Assembly (NCBI GenBank): GCA_907165135.1
Contig: OU015569.1
Coordinates: 7,936,001 to 8,000,000 of the forward strand
Source of the DNA: Oikopleura dioica
Lineage: Eukaryota > Animalia > Chordata
Reading direction: 5' to 3'
DNA: 64,000 nt
The position numbers were made by a program, and so were the translations under genes. Below the pieces are notes generated by a model that was not told the origin of the DNA, did not search any database, and saw only the letters and a program-made list of their open reading frames with translations. Positions 42,320-49,064 of this stretch are shown here, one piece after another (the stretch's first letter is position 1; each line of letters opens with the position of its first letter).

Positions 42320-43799
42320 TTATTTAAAGTCATTGTCATTTAATTCTAGCTGGTCTTCGTCTACTAGTTCTTCCTTCTTTTTATTAGCGGAGCCTACATT
42401 TATGTACATCAGGGGCTCTTTCAGAGTGACCCGATATTTGTAAGGTCGTGTGTTTTCAAACATAAACGGATATCTTTGACGGAAGAACTCGTCCACAGAC
42501 AAATCTTTGCTGGGCGAGCTGTAGACTTTGAGAGCGGCGGCTAAGAGAGAAGAAGTCGAGTTCGAGTTCTTGTCGAAGAGTGGTTCAGACGAGGTGATTC
42601 GTCGCAACGTTGGATGGAAAAGGGCTACCTCCGTGCATCCTCGGACAATCATGTAGAGAAAAATGTAGTAAGATACAACAGCAGGAATAGCAAAATAACT
42701 CTGAAAAGAGACGACGCTAGCAGCGGCTAATGAAGCCACGCTGAACGATAATATTTGTGCTGGCTGTGGTCGTAGCTGATGGGAGAGGAAGAGTCCATCT
42801 CTGATGAAATCACGGGAACGGGGCTAAACCAGATCTTACTTTCTGAAAGGGCAATAATAAACTTACTTTGACGAACTGTATTTTGACATCGCCAACGGGA
42901 TTGAAAAATATATTCTGGCAATCTTTTAAATATGCCTGTTTGGTTGTTATTCTACGGCGTATTCCGCAAGAGGAAAGTCGAAAGGCGAAAAAGTGCTGAT
43001 GCCAGCGAGAGCGCTCATTCCAAGGTCAAACGTTGCCAGTGAATCCATCCAAAGAAACGAGGAGTCGCGCATCCACGCACCACCCCCAATATCGGATTCA
43101 AGAGTCATCGCTGCCTGGCGCATCGTATAGCCTCCGATAACGAAGAGCGGAATAGGATACAAATTAGGTGCAATAATCTTTCCCGTTGTTAGTGGACCTT
43201 TGTACGCGCTTCGAAGCGTTTTTCGTCGTACTTTTTCGTCTATTGCCAGCGGGGCTGAATAAATCGTCATGTAGAAACTTTTCTGCCATCTTGAGCGCCT
43301 TTGGGTCCGTTGTTGCTTCCTTGTCATAAAAGGGATGTTTCGCGTTTTGGTGAAAAAATCGCGAGCGATAGAACAGTGAGAATATCTCATTCTTGCGATA
43401 GTCGTAATTTTGCCAGTGCAGCTGATCTCGCAGAAAGGACTCTTTTCTTCGAAGTTCTTCGTTTTCTCGGCGATAAGACAAAACAACGGCAGATGATGCT
43501 AGAAATCGGCTGCCTTATCATCCGGGTTTGTATCGCAAATCTCGTCGATGAACAAAAAGACTAAAAACCCGTTCCGATCGCGAAAAGAGCAACTCCGCCG
43601 CCAACGCCGAAGTTTGTAATGAGATTCTCGAGGACTCTTTTAGGGCTTAATTTTCTAGAGATAGACTCTGATCGAGTCAACAACAGGACCCGCGAAAAGT
43701 AGCTGCGCTATGAATAAGTATTCTAGTGATAATCGTCGAAACCCGTCTCAACCTGACAAGACTTTTGTCGCGAATCTCCCCGCGAATAAGCTTTGACAT
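42320..43799 (-). CDS. OXA1/COX18 (YidC)-like mitochondrial insertase
   Basis: Basic N-terminus, TM1 GVALFAIGTGSRFL followed by a helical region, IPLFVIGGYTMRQ...GGGAW...WMDSLATFD, and later TM segments (IPAVVSYYIFLY...FHPTLRR). It needs one frameshift near 43235, and some splice sites are tentative. Confidence 0.5.
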
Positions 43800-44169
43800 T
43801 TTTGATTCAAAAATTTAAATTTGCGAATGAGCATAATTTCATGTTTGGGAATGTCCCCTTTCCTGGAGATGTGAGATTTTGATAAAACGGTTCAAAAATG
43901 GAAACAGTCTGGAAGGCAGTCGGTGCGGTCGGGGAGCTTATCACCTCCAAACTTGAGGCAAGACAGCGCTTTCGTATAATCGAGCTGCTCGAAATTCGAA
44001 TCATCGTCTATCTCTCGGACTTGGACGCGCCTCGGCCAATCAGCGCGCCTCAACGCTGAAAGATTTCCTTTCTTCCAGCATCCATTTTCCCCTGAGATTA
44101 TCCCTGCCATGATTGTTTGAAATTCAAACTTTGAATTATCAATCGAGGAAATTTATAATTTCAGAGAAT

Positions 44170-44941
44170 ATGAATGGTTCTGTTGCGTTCGAAGACATCG
44201 AGTTTCTAAGCGAAGATGAGCTTCTCAAGATTACTCCTAAGTTTCGAGAAGCGCGACTACAAATGATCAGCGGCGAGTTCGGCCCGTTTACTCCCGGCGT
44301 CCCGCTCAAGGTCCCAGCCTGGATGGCGATCAATCTAGGTACAGTCATTAGTAGTGATCCTAGTCATTGGAAGTGCTTTAGTTCAGCGAAACTTGTGCAT
44401 TGTTCATCAACCAGCGTGGCTTAGCGTAGCCGAGCTCCAAAAGTGGTACGAGGCGGAGAAGAACGAAGAGCAGAACGCGGTGAACCCTGTTCACTACAAT
44501 TACAGGTATGTTTCGGGAGTGCCATACGTTTCTGACACAATTTCAGAGAACTGTCTCGTCTCCTGCTTCGTCATTGCCGCGACGGTTTCAAAGACGTTGA
44601 CCAGCTGGATCAGCTGATTGAAGACCTTTGGAACATTCGCGTCGCCAAGTTGCGAGTTTCCTGCCAAAACGTTCTCAAGACCCGCTGGCAGATGGAAATC
44701 GCTGACCACGGAGGAGTTTACAAGATCTCCAACTTCACCCAGTTGGAAGTCAACTTCATTCGGTAGTAACTCATAAAATCTCTTTTCGTCTCTCATCCCC
44801 GTTTTCAGACAGGCATTCCTTCACTCCCTCAAAGTCAGTTTCACGATCTCGAACAAGATCACCGACTTGGAGCAGAAATCGGCCCAGCACTTCGACGCGA
44901 CAACTATCACGAGCACTACTCTTTCTCAGAAAACTATCTAG
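44170..44941 (+). CDS. GINS2: GINS complex subunit PSF2
   Basis: IEFLSEDELLKITPKF...ISGEFGPFTPGVPLKVPAWMAINL...PAWLSV...LIEDLWNIRVAKL...NFTQLEVNFIR, with GT-AG introns. Confidence 0.93.
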
Positions 44942-45441
44942 TCTATCATTTAGCTGCCAAAATCTTTGTTCACTTGTTTCCCTACTTCAACACTTCTTCT
45001 GTATAAGTTTACCTTCCGGACAATAATCTTTAATCTTTTCAGGAATGTTTTTTCGAACTCAAACGGCGTGATTTAGATCGCGGCTTCCAACTAGTACCAA
45101 TTCATTGGATTATCGTTTGCACTCGGACTCGGGAAGTTTTCGATTGAAACGGGCTCAGCGGGAAATAAATAGATAATTATATATACCCTTTGAATGTAAG
45201 AATTCGATAATCATGAAAAATTCTAAAGTTTTTGACTGATCGCTTTTGAAGAGCAAATTTCAAAGCCTGTGAAACTGTGTGAGTTGAAAATGATCGTTGA
45301 AAAATCATCTGCGAAATGATTTTTGCGAAATTTTCGCGATTTGGGAAAGCACCGAAATTGTCTGGATGACACCTTTTTGTTCCCAGCGTGTGTCCAATGA
45401 AGTTAGACCGCCCGCGCTCTAAAAATAGAAAAGTCGGTTAG

Positions 45442-45449
45442 TTTCGCGC
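45442..45449 (+). promoter_or_regulatory. candidate E2F-binding site TTTCGCGC upstream of the chromodomain gene
   Basis: Exact TTTSSCGC consensus about 125 bp upstream of the ATG, in a GC-richer patch. Short motif, could be chance. Confidence 0.35.
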
Positions 45450-45574
45450 TCGAGCGCCACCTGTAGGCGCCTACATAAATCTCGCCTACCTATAAGAATA
45501 GTTAAAAGTTTTCTTATCTACTTTTGTTTATCGTAAAACGGACACAACGTGCGAGTGAAAGAACAATTAAAGAA

Positions 45575-46968
45575 ATGACTGAAGAAAAGAAACGCGGAAG
45601 AGGACGACCAAAGAAAACTGATATTCAAGCCTCTCAGTCAGAGGGAGAGCTCGAGTCCAACAATACCGAGCGACGTGGACGAGGAAGACCAAGGAAGTCA
45701 GATGGTCCAGGAAAGCCAAGAAGAAGCTCAACTCCAGTATCGCGATCTTCGAGCCGGGCCCCAAAGCGCGCCCCAAAGCGCAAGTCTGCGCCGGCGGACC
45801 ATGATGCTCCAAAGCGAGTGTAAGCCTCTAAAGTTTAAACAATTACTCTATCGTTAATACAGACAATCTCTAAAATTCTATTAGCCTTCGACAGCGAGAA
45901 GCCGACAAGATCGTCGAAATCGTGGACGAGAGGAAGTCGCGCGGCAACGTCCAATTCAAAGTCGTCTGGGGCGATGAGAACAAATCTCCAAGTTGGGAGC
46001 CAGAAGATAAAATTCCAGAAGAGCTGATCGAAGCCTTCCGAGAAGAGCCCGACTCCGATATCGAGTACGAAGTCGAGAAAATACTCGATACGCGCAAAAT
46101 GAAAGGCTCGATCGAGTATCTCGTACGATGGGCTGGATTCACCAGGTAAAAACTCGCTCTCGAGTCCAAATATCATTAATCGTGTCAAGTGAACACGATA
46201 CATGGGAGCCAGAGGCGAACATGCCGAAGAAAAAGGTGAAGGAGTTCAAAAAACGACAAAACAACTCTGACGAAGAAGCAGACTCCGACGATCCAGACAA
46301 GGAATATATGGTCGAGGTGATTGTCATTAATCTTTTCACAAGACGTTCACCGCTAGTTTTCAGAAAATCATCATGCGCAAAGGAGTTGGAAAGCGACGCC
46401 TCTACCGCGTGCGCTGGCTAGGTTACAGCGAGTAAGTTGATTTCAGTTGCCTCAAACTCAACCTAACGATTAAATTTAGCAAACACAACTCTTGGGAACC
46501 CGAGGAAAACCTGGCTGGCGCGAAGAGAATGCTTCGCGAATTCAATAAGGTCCAAGATGAGCGCGAGGCGAAGCAGGCCGAAAAAGAGTACGAGGTAGAG
46601 AAAATCGTCGACGAGAAGCTCATGTACAAGCGACCACACTTCCTAGTCAAGTGGAAAAACTACCATTCTGGGTGAGTCAATTTACCAACATTTCACTATT
46701 TAGAAATGCCAAGTCCACATCAAAGAGCGTGAACGCAGTTAACTTGTAATTTAGACACAACACATGGCAAGACGAGAAATCGCTTGCCGACTGCCAAGAC
46801 GCGCTGGAGAAGTGGGCAATCACCAAAGAGAAGCGCGTGGTTAGAAAGAAGGAGAACGCCGAACGTCGAGAGAAGAAGAAAATCGAGGAGAAAGCGAAAC
46901 GCGAAGAATCAAAACTCGCCAAAGCTGCTGAAAAGGCAGCGAAGAAATCCAAGACCACCACTGCCTAA
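45575..46968 (+). CDS. chromatin protein with two AT-hooks and four tandem chromodomains
   Basis: KKRGRGRPKK and RRGRGRPRK, then a degenerate chromodomain 1 and EYEVEKILD...LVRWAGF...DTWEPEANM, EYMVEKII...VRWLGY...NSWEPEENL, EYEVEKIVD...VKWKNY...NTWQDEKSL, and a K/E-rich tail. Five GT-AG introns, all frame-consistent. Confidence 0.9.
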
Positions 46969-47799
46969 AATGATGACTTCAGCGAATCGCATAACTCCAA
47001 GATTTATCCATATTATTCTTCCCTGAACGTTTTCCTTGTGGATTGCCCGGGTCGCGCCGTTAAACAAGGCACAAGTCTGCAATTTTTGATTGGGCGCGAC
47101 CCGTGCAAACTACTGTAGATAATCCTATCTCGGGTAGCGCACAGAATCCGAAAATGGGTTCCGGCGCGCCGATTCTCTCGAGGGAAACAATAGATTCCCT
47201 GTTATTAACGATCTGAAGGTGAATCCCATTATGGACGCTTTAAAGTGATCTACCCAAGAGAGGATTATCCACAGTGTGTTTCGTTTTATTCCCCCTCATG
47301 AGCCTGTCACCGTCTTTACCTTCGCGACGTGATGCCACCCGTTATCTCAATGTTGAAATATTGGGCGATACTTTTTATATTCGTTAAACTGACTGAAACA
47401 TATTCCCTGGCTGTATACCGATGATTTTTGGCATTTACCCCGACAGAAAAAGAATGATAAGCATGATATATAGTACTGATCATACTTTTGGCCCAGCCAG
47501 TCAAATTTCTCGAGAGACGTGGTGATGGCGTTCTTGGGAAAAGAGAAAAATCATCGGTACTCTTTTTCATTGCCCTTTTGAAGCAAATCAGAAGGGCCAG
47601 TCAAGTGTCAACAGTTTTGTACACTTGCTCTTTTTGCCTGAACTCTTTTTATTCCCCCGAAATAAAAGAAAAAGCTTAAAAAAGTTGCCTTTTCGATTCT
47701 CTGCATATCAGACATGCATATACAGTATATGATATACTGCATAAGAAGACGTCAATTGTCAGTTTATTCGGTTTATTTTCAATCGTTTTTATTGATTAT

Positions 47800-49064
47800 C
47801 TAAGCTTGACAGAAAGTTTCCTCGCAATTGTCGTCTTCGAAGCACAGTTCGTTATCTCCGTTGCAATAGTTGACGTTGATCTCGAGTGATTCTGTGAACT
47901 GGTCGAAGCGCTCAGAAATAGAAGCCAGGATCTGTTCCTGGTAGTACGCTAAAAAAGTATAAACTGGTGCGTATTACCAGAGAGCTCACCATTGCAGGCA
48001 TAGTGCATCAACTTCTCGGTGTACTTGTTGTACTGCTCGAGAATGAACTCGTAGTAGAAGGTCTGGACGTCAACTTCACTCTTTATGTCCATCATCGCGC
48101 AGTAAAGGCAGTCCATTCGCCAGGCGTTGCGGTTCGCGTGGTTCTTCACAATCTTCAGTTCATCGTTCATATTGTTGTTGATTGCACTCAAACCAGCAAT
48201 TTCAATGTCGATTACTTCGGGAGTCGACCGTTCTGCATCTCGCGCAATTCTAAATTTAATTTAAGACGAGGACATTATGGAGAGTGACACCTTGGATTGA
48301 CAGGATGGGCAAACTTGGGATTGTTGCTGATTTCAATCCAAGGACTCGACTCGACCAAATCGCAGTAGCACTCCTTCAGGTCATTATTACTGTCACCGAA
48401 TCTTGGGTCACCGCATTCGCTTTTGTCAGTTTCTCCGTTGTAAAATCGCGTTGCTTGTAATAGTAACATTCTCGCCATTTTGTCTGTACTTACTTTGCGT
48501 CGCTCTGTCGTCGTAACCTGCATCATAAAAATACTGACTCTGAAGCTGGATTTTAAAATCACAGCCAGTCACTTCTGCGCCAAACCATTCATCGTAAGGC
48601 TTGAAGACGGACTCACCACCATTGTTACAATTTTTAAATTGATCTTTATCGTTGAAGTCTGGTCGCGAATTCTCTTCTCGATCTAGGTATTCGACCTCGA
48701 ACTTCTCATAGTCGGCGAGCAAATCCAACATATCTGTGGGATTATCATAGGGATTCGAGAAGCAGTCCTCAAATCCGTTAGAACCAGGTCAATCTACAGA
48801 GCTTACTTTTGAATTGATTTGTGGCCATGTACACGAGTTTGCCCCACAATTGTCTGCAGCCCACAATTTTACGTCATTTGCGTCTTGCCAAGCATCCCAG
48901 CAAGTTCCTCCATAAATAGGCGCATTAGCATCAGAGTCAAGAGGAAGGCATGAATCCTGTGACACATGTTCGATTCTAGTACTTTCGTTTCTCTCTTTTA
49001 AGTTCCTAATTCGAACAAGTTCCTTAGCTGCAAAAGCTGCACCGACGAGAGCGAAACTCTTCAT
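47800..49064 (-). CDS. secreted acidic Cys-containing protein of unknown function
   Basis: Signal MKSFALVGAAFAA and consecutive exons with GT-AG introns, ending NYCNGDNELCFEDDNCEETFCQA*. Confidence 0.7.

Follow-up and report, generated by a model that had tools for sequence, protein, structure and literature searches.

The window analysed here, a 64,000-nucleotide stretch of Oikopleura dioica DNA (GCA_907165135.1, contig OU015569.1, positions 7,936,001 to 8,000,000), holds on its + strand a six-exon gene whose product carries AT-hook motifs, four tandem chromodomains (CD1 to CD4) and a C-terminal helix. This is one real, expressed, spliced gene. We propose, with a probability of roughly 0.6, that it encodes a chromatin protein that reads methylated histone lysines multivalently, a reader of the HP1 type that would need no chromoshadow dimerisation. 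The reading frame opens with an ATG at 45575 and closes with a TAA at 46966-46968, and the joined frame is open over 368 codons. A model reading the DNA letters had placed the gene at 45575-46968 (the original prediction), and these bounds are exactly the start and stop codons. All five introns run from GT to AG, with lengths of 65, 44, 47, 48 and 83 nucleotides (nt). The features of the gene are listed below, with residues in amino acids (aa); the Atlantic orthologue (P0152) is UniProt E4YTN0.

45575..46968, + strand: whole coding region, six exons and 368 codons with frame-consistent GT..AG junctions; colinear with the Atlantic orthologue, with the same five intron positions
45575-45819, 45885-46145, 46190-46316, 46364-46431, 46480-46671 and 46755-46968, + strand: exons 1 to 6 (E1-E6), from a three-frame reading
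45575..45819, + strand: exon 1, the basic, Ser/Pro-rich N-terminal region, which holds both AT-hooks
45590..45616, + strand: AT-hook 1, aa 6-14, an RGRP core between basic residues, read by eye
45671..45697, + strand: AT-hook 2, aa 33-41, an RGRP core matched in alignment to the only hook of the Atlantic orthologue
45820..45884, + strand: intron 1, 65 nt, GTAAGC..TTAG; the orthologue has an intron at the matching position
45901..46044, + strand: CD1, aa 88-135, without an aromatic cage and free of introns; the second Chromo stretch of exon 2
46060..46259, + strand: CD2, aa 141-192, full cage Y143/W164/F167, with intron 2 inside
46146-46189, + strand: intron 2, within CD2; the orthologue has an intron at the matching position
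46299..46552, + strand: CD3, aa 206-258, full cage Y208/W229/Y232, with introns 3 and 4 inside; the best conserved unit
46317-46363 and 46432-46479, + strand: introns 3 and 4, within CD3; both junctions occur in one metatranscriptome contig
46583..46821, + strand: CD4, aa 269-320, full cage Y271/W292/Y295, with intron 5 inside
46672-46754, + strand: intron 5, within CD4; the orthologue has an intron at the matching position
46822..46965, + strand: C-terminal helix, Lys/Glu/Arg-rich, ending in the Ala-rich motif K-L-x-K-A-A-E-x-A-A-K-K

The chromodomains were called by a profile search with the Pfam Chromo model (PF00385), run exon by exon on the window. Exons 2 and 5 each matched over two stretches, at expectation (E) values of 1.1e-12 and 1.6e-12 respectively; exon 3 matched at E 1.1e-4 and exon 4 at E 0.027. 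The full-length orthologue matches the same profile at E 1.9e-40, with three stretches above threshold. Cage residues were read from the translation against HP1 alignments. The triad of CD2, CD3 and CD4 is conserved family-wide, apart from exchanges between Tyr and Phe and a single His, which the paralogue P0014 has as the third cage residue of its CD2. CD1, for which a family hidden Markov model gives E values of 7e-3 to 6e-5, retains W110 alone from the cage, with K90 and D112 at the other two positions, and this cage-less state is conserved in two of the paralogue types described below (A and B). The linkers between CD1 and CD2 and between CD2 and CD3 are acidic and Ser-rich; that between CD3 and CD4 is a charged helix. 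The original prediction had described two AT-hooks and four tandem chromodomains, the first of them degenerate and three with a full aromatic cage, and the RGRP motifs and cage residues in the translation, together with the Pfam Chromo matches in the exons, bear this out, for the hooks at the level of the motif. Its acidic spacers apply to the first two linkers but not to the third, which is not simply acidic.

Equally telling is what the protein lacks. Pfam searches of the exons and of the full-length orthologue returned no domain besides Chromo: neither a chromoshadow domain nor a Pc box was detected, nor the SNF2 or Helicase_C domain of a CHD-type helicase, in agreement with the prediction that chromoshadow, Pc box and enzyme domains would be missing. 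We considered CD1 as a possible chromoshadow domain and rejected it: the Chromo_shadow profile (PF01393) scores 18.5 bits on the CD1 part of exon 2, under its cutoff of 22.4, and has no match in the orthologue; the S-W-E-P turn is kept; and the best match of the orthologue's CD1 in the Protein Data Bank (PDB) is the chromodomain of HP1beta (E 4e-4). The four units share 20-41% amino-acid identity and repeats among them at the DNA level are limited to short motif-encoding stretches, so the array is old and its repeats are not recent. A recent tandem duplication of one chromodomain exon is ruled out by the same divergence and repeat pattern, and by the position-specific clades of the domain tree.

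RNA evidence establishes the gene model. Contigs from a marine-plankton polyA metatranscriptome match the window without mismatch, apart from one odd letter in one piece, and confirm three of the five junctions of the window gene (E1/E2, E3/E4 and E4/E5); for E1/E2, a contig aligns from 45885 onward and its 11 overhanging nt equal the last bases of E1. In addition, an intron-less RNA contig of 1264 nt encodes the complete 320-aa orthologue. Separate genes, which the original prediction had allowed for, and a chimeric model are both ruled out by the spliced contigs and this whole reading frame on one transcript. AT skew in the region around 45575-46968 is also strongly positive (0.25-0.41), as would suit a + strand that codes for a Lys/Glu-rich protein. 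For three RNA runs labelled O. dioica, mapping to the window is confined to its most conserved 40 nt, around 46580-46620, with an identity of just 90-95%. The overhangs of these reads translate to the Atlantic orthologue and to a type-C paralogue, which assigns them to another cryptic O. dioica lineage than that of the window, and the runs are unusable for the start, end or expression level of the window gene. A link from 46620 to 46756 in some of the sister-lineage reads agrees with splicing of E5 to E6 in their lineage. The identity level of these runs illustrates the distance between cryptic O. dioica lineages.

The orthologue (CBY38819.1), a 320-aa 'Chromo domain-containing protein' from O. 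dioica GCA_000209555.1, was reached with exon 2 as the query against 1.84 billion cluster representatives and then by looking up a cluster; database searches used single exons or this protein, and folding used this protein. The window exons map onto it in order, with identities of 43% for E1 (partial, across 37 aligning residues, the least conserved part), 61% for E2, 58% for E3, 86% for E4, 73% for E5 and 67% for E6, and introns interrupt its gene at five identical codon positions. The two proteins share the order of cage-less CD1, CD2, CD3, CD4 and tail; E4YTN0 has a shorter N-terminus with one AT-hook-like motif (GRGQP), versus two RGRP hooks in the window protein. Four-gene microsynteny further joins window 42731-48770 to an 8213-nt stretch of FN655333.1 (GCA_000209555.1), where both assemblies have, in order, a minus-strand gene, PSF2 on the + strand, the chromodomain gene and a downstream minus-strand gene. 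Colinearity, shared introns and synteny identify the window gene as orthologous to E4YTN0. The orthology check set beside the original prediction thus led to an uncharacterised O. dioica entry as the only clear orthologue and not to a known multi-chromodomain protein. The synteny anchor is as follows.

44170..44940, + strand: PSF2 (GINS subunit), PSF2_N E 2.9e-19 and Sld5 E 9.6e-6; a separate protein

PSF2 lies ~630 nt upstream of the chromodomain gene on the same strand, a pairing also found in the Atlantic assembly. The downstream gene (47800-48770, minus strand) is 69-88% identical by piece to its Atlantic counterpart, whose 279-aa product has no Pfam match on record. Introns are much longer in the Atlantic assembly, where the chromodomain gene spans 1918 nt against 1394 nt in the window. 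Estimated from aligned pieces, amino-acid identity to the Atlantic proteins is ~77-82% for the three neighbours and ~64% for the chromodomain gene; on this rough comparison, which covers three neighbour genes only and is not a selection test, the chromodomain gene appears to diverge faster than its neighbours. Divergence is greatest in the N-terminus, CD1, CD2 and the linkers and least in CD3.

Both ends of the protein are distinctive. At the N-terminus, exon 1 residues 33-69, which include AT-hook 2, align with residues 4-31 of the orthologue, and the alignment keeps an AT-hook motif at the same N-terminal place in orthologues. The Pfam AT_hook model (PF02178, cutoff 17.4 bits) gives exon 1 a score of 13.4 bits, with its best stretch at aa 6-15; type C passes, at 21.3 and 17.7 bits. 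Residues 1-37 of the orthologue are predicted to be disordered, with a predicted local distance difference test score (pLDDT) below 50 in the AlphaFold2 (AF2) model. At the other end, the protein stops 48 residues past CD4. The AF2 model of the orthologue places a single helix at residues 266-319 (54 residues, pLDDT 85-92), and the terminal Ala-rich motif is invariant in 9/9 sequences of the family alignment; exon 6 has no significant Pfam match.

Word-based and profile searches, combined with alignments, assembled a family around the window gene in which at least three paralogue types, A, B and C, share the C-terminal helix and the Ala-rich end motif. Type A comprises the window gene, its Atlantic orthologue, P0161 and P0162, and has one or two AT-hooks, a cage-less CD1, CD2, CD3 and CD4. 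Type B (P0014, P0009, P0018, P0177-P0187 and P0188) has a cage-less CD1, CD2 or none, an extra cage-less chromo-like unit, CD3 and CD4, with an AT-hook that is weak or absent except in P0014, which has GRGRP. P0188 is annotated in the X-specific region of O. dioica OKI2018_I69 (record XSR, g15730) and carries a cage-less CD1, no CD2, the extra unit, CD3, CD4 and the family tail. We had considered P0014, P0009 and P0018 as orthologues from distant species, a view revised to type B once P0188, an O. dioica member of that type, was found. The extra segment, between CD2 and CD3, is ~45 residues long (P0014 ~160-215, with equivalents in P0009, P0018 and P0188) and follows the pattern V-x-Y-K/E-V/I-K-hydrophobic-G, then P-I/L-Y/H-E/K-I/L. 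It has no Pfam call and resembles one more unit, a fifth, of chromo- or barrel-like kind and without a cage. Type C (P0164-P0167 and P0084) combines two to four AT-hooks with only two chromodomains, one CD2-like and one CD4-like. Overhangs of O. dioica reads at window 46595 and 46784 carry its mRNA sequence, which marks it as expressed. Over the three types, hook number rises as chromodomain number falls.

A tree of 53 domains, built on only 60 columns and weak at its deep forks, places each of the four chromodomain positions in its own clade across paralogues and lineages, mostly with starred support. As these clades hold across types, the four positions are old and distinct. All named family members are from O. 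dioica, the others coming from run assemblies and marine metatranscriptomes; that the family is restricted to appendicularians is a reasonable guess.

Comparison with solved structures points to the HP1 class. Beyond the HP1beta match of its CD1, the orthologue finds CBX2, CBX5 and MPP8 with CD2 (E ~1e-7), CBX5 with CD3 (E 5e-11), and Drosophila HP1 (E 1.5e-10) and Clr4 with CD4, and the C-terminal half of the window's own CD3 closely resembles CBX2. The AF2 model of the orthologue, made from a nine-sequence alignment (mean pLDDT 72.7, predicted TM-score (pTM) 0.30), shows four beta-beta-beta-alpha units with pLDDT ~75-87 (83-87 for CD1) and a helix that runs from CD3 into CD4. In Foldseek searches, single units match the chromodomains of MPP8, CBX1 and Rhino with H3K9me3 at template-modelling (TM) scores of 0.8-0.85 and root-mean-square deviations (rmsd) of 0.6-1.3 A; for example, MPP8 (3r93) is matched at TM 0.85, rmsd 0.7 A and 43% identity, and CBX1-H3K9me3 (6d07) at TM 0.84. 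Two-domain matches to cpSRP43, CHD1 and CHD4 have an rmsd of 7.5-23 A, which argues against any fixed tandem arrangement shared with these proteins. HP1-class selectivity has been attributed to a pair of acidic residues, the polar fingers: a Glu in front of the cage aromatic and an Asp that follows the WEPE turn. Pc-class domains have Val and Leu at these places and form a hydrophobic clasp (PMC3013012). In CD2, CD3 and CD4 alike, the top polar finger is present, a Glu that precedes the cage Tyr.

From these features we propose the following mechanism. Each of CD2, CD3 and CD4 would hold a methylated lysine of an ARKS-type histone tail, with H3K9me2/3 the most likely mark. Linked on one chain by short acidic or helical spacers, the domains would let weak affinities add up across neighbouring tails or nucleosomes, such that chromodomains in cis would replace the chromoshadow-mediated dimerisation and oligomerisation of HP1. 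Further contacts, with the minor groove of AT-rich DNA, may come from the N-terminal AT-hook or hooks. CD1 and the C-terminal helix may bind a partner or serve a structural purpose, as suggested by the conservation of CD1 in types A and B and of the terminal helix motif throughout the family. There is precedent for the central idea in fission yeast, where four engineered chromodomains are necessary and sufficient for targeting Swi6 to H3K9me without chromoshadow oligomerisation (PMC9269880). The marks themselves are also available: O. dioica has H3K9me2/3 and H3K27me3, and H3K27me3 overlaps H3K9me3 in heterochromatin (PMC5240408). The original prediction of a protein that could read several methyl-lysines across nucleosomes on AT-rich DNA, a candidate heterochromatin or transposon-silencing factor, is reasonable but an inference throughout.

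Several observations weigh against this proposal. First, CD1 cannot cage a methyl-lysine, which brings the valency to three at most. Second, the DNA-binding element is variable: exon 1 falls short of the Pfam AT_hook cutoff, the hook is degenerate or absent in type-B paralogues and it reads GRGQP in the Atlantic orthologue. Third, the pTM of the model leaves it silent on domain arrangement. Fourth, where the bottom-finger Asp would be expected, CD2 has Pro and CD3 has Ala, and the Asp of CD4 lies one position further on; with this residue absent from CD2 and CD3 and only arguable in CD4, CD2-CD4 appear HP1-like in class while their selectivity for H3K9 or H3K27 is not readable from sequence. 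Fifth, chromodomains can bind non-histone partners, as in cpSRP43. Finally, no binding, localisation or phenotype data were found for the window protein or any family member.

The fourth of these points opens the way to an alternative in which the same multivalent reader serves H3K27me3, or chromatin with both K9me3 and K27me3, and stands in for a CBX subunit where canonical parts of Polycomb repressive complex 1 (PRC1) are reported missing. Homologues of RNF1, PCGF, SCMH1 and SUZ12 were not identified in O. dioica, and EZH2 and EED are duplicated; the study and its supplements contain no treatment of chromodomain readers (PMC5240408). These losses and the overlap of the two marks would suit such a role, as would the missing bottom-finger Asp of CD2 and CD3 and the presence of CBX2 among the best PDB matches of the C-terminal half of CD3 and of the orthologue's CD2. 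However, all three caged domains have Glu, not the Pc-class Val, before the cage Tyr; HP1, MPP8, Clr4 and Rhino outscore Pc-class chromodomains for CD3 and CD4; and neither the exons nor the orthologue has a Pc box. We consider this alternative unlikely.

A second alternative, which seems to us quite improbable, is a non-histone scaffold whose domains bind proteins or RNA, in the manner of cpSRP43 or of chromoshadow-type domains, and whose basic N-terminus is a nuclear-localisation or nucleic-acid-binding tail. The top Foldseek match of the multi-domain model is indeed CD2-CD3 of cpSRP43 (5e4w), but the large two-domain rmsd of the cpSRP43 and CHD matches indicates that the fold is repeated and the arrangement is not, and no ankyrin or other partner domains were found in the orthologue. 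A conserved, cage-less CD1 and the conserved C-terminal motif would suit a dedicated partner; the complete cages of CD2-CD4 across paralogues, and their 33-44% identity to domains solved with H3K9me3, argue instead for histone binding. That the locus derives from a transposon, for example as an array of chromovirus integrase chromodomains, that it is a decaying pseudogene, or that the model fuses separate genes, is effectively refuted: Tf2-type chromodomains do occur among its Foldseek structural neighbours in the ESM Atlas, but the frame is open through six exons, the mRNA is spliced, the orthologue's reading frame lies on one RNA contig, synteny and intron positions are conserved, integrase, reverse transcriptase and SH3_Tf2 domains are absent, and the best matches are host HP1-class chromodomains.

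Strings of chromodomains are not peculiar to this family. Most of the best 150 matches of the exon 2 search carry 2-9 chromodomains, often with nothing else, bearing in mind that this query spans one and a half chromodomains and favours arrays in the ranking. Examples with five chromodomains are ODM89351.1 of the springtail Orchesella cincta and XP_011493091.2 of Aedes aegypti (P0157), the latter made of near-identical repeats; a partial protein of the krill Meganyctiphanes, a protein of the tardigrade Hypsibius and many plankton transcripts are also multi-chromodomain. The RefSeq name of XP_011493091.2, 'ABC transporter F family member 4', is probably a misnomer, prompted by charged low-complexity regions. 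In the domain tree, the chromodomains of the arthropod arrays cluster within each protein and are often near-identical, which indicates independent and more recent internal duplications arriving at the same layout. Orthology with the arthropod proteins was rejected on this tree, with its 60 columns and weak deep forks.

The original prediction had implied a singular architecture; the AT-hooks with a cage-less first unit are distinctive, but arrays consisting of 3-9 chromodomains and nothing else are common among the database matches. The gene is already catalogued as an unnamed chromodomain protein, and its architecture is unusual but not unique. A search of the literature on Oikopleura chromodomain or HP1 proteins and on four-chromodomain proteins found no study of the window protein, and none was found on the function of the arthropod multi-chromodomain proteins. 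A protein feature-atlas search returned generic chromodomain clusters only, with all scores <0.9. Among the weaker matches are fusions of chromodomains with a linker-histone H1/H5 domain (PF00538) or with BTB (PF00651), represented by P0197, P0201 and P0202 (JGI metatranscriptomes, ~630 aa) and P0065 (ENA, 633 aa).

A lone methylated tail is bound weakly by HP1-type readers, which as a rule achieve specificity by dimerising and oligomerising. Tunicates, among them the planktonic O. dioica, are the closest invertebrate relatives of vertebrates. We raise, as an unlikely speculation, the idea that the family is a natural HP1 surrogate that works without oligomerisation, with a valency of about four chromodomains hard-wired in a chordate that has little heterochromatin and a reduced Polycomb kit. 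Its diverged chromodomains might read H3K9me and H3K27me on dual-marked chromatin, and its fast divergence and three types might reflect conflict with transposons or sex-chromosome chromatin. More generally, a conserved natural family of multivalent readers would allow experiments on valency, spacer length, a cage-less module and an AT-hook as determinants of heterochromatin recognition, and would supply a candidate reader for O. dioica chromatin in which H3K9me3 and H3K27me3 overlap and canonical PRC1 subunits are missing. The value of the finding lies in a specific architecture and its evolutionary stability, not in a new principle, as chromodomain strings are not rare in databases. The gene is probably best classed as an HP1-type reader that would gain valency in cis, within a small, apparently fast-evolving family whose domains are position-specific.

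How the window protein compares with known systems helps to define it. With HP1 (CBX1, CBX3, CBX5, Swi6 and HP1a) it has its chromodomain class in common, as each of the four units finds its greatest similarity there, and the task likely to be shared is H3K9me reading helped by nucleic-acid contacts. The linkers of HP1 are acidic and Ser-rich, and the first two of the window protein are similar. Unlike HP1, however, it lacks a chromoshadow domain and hence a chromoshadow dimer and a PxVxL platform; its valency would come from three or four chromodomains per chain, and its putative DNA contact would be made by an AT-hook and not by the HP1 hinge. CBX2 resembles it in combining an HP1/Pc-type chromodomain with an AT-hook, but has a single N-terminal chromodomain, then the hook and a C-terminal Pc box, whereas the window protein places its hooks before four chromodomains and has no Pc box; at the clasp position, the Pc class, CBX2 included, has Val and the window chromodomains have Glu. 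CHD1, CHD4 and cpSRP43 also carry tandem chromodomains on one chain and are its top multi-domain Foldseek matches, but CHD proteins bear an SNF2 helicase and cpSRP43 ankyrin repeats, neither of which occurs in the window protein or its orthologue. The arthropod arrays of Orchesella, Aedes and Meganyctiphanes are likewise built from Pfam Chromo domains, 3-5 of them, and nothing else of significance, but have no AT-hook, cage-less first unit or shared tail. The nearest functional parallel is engineered: the Swi6 2xCD-GST construct likewise presents four linked chromodomains per complex (PMC9269880). Its chromodomains are identical and dimerised by GST, whereas those of the window protein have diverged and include one without a cage; the same logic would here be built into a natural protein.

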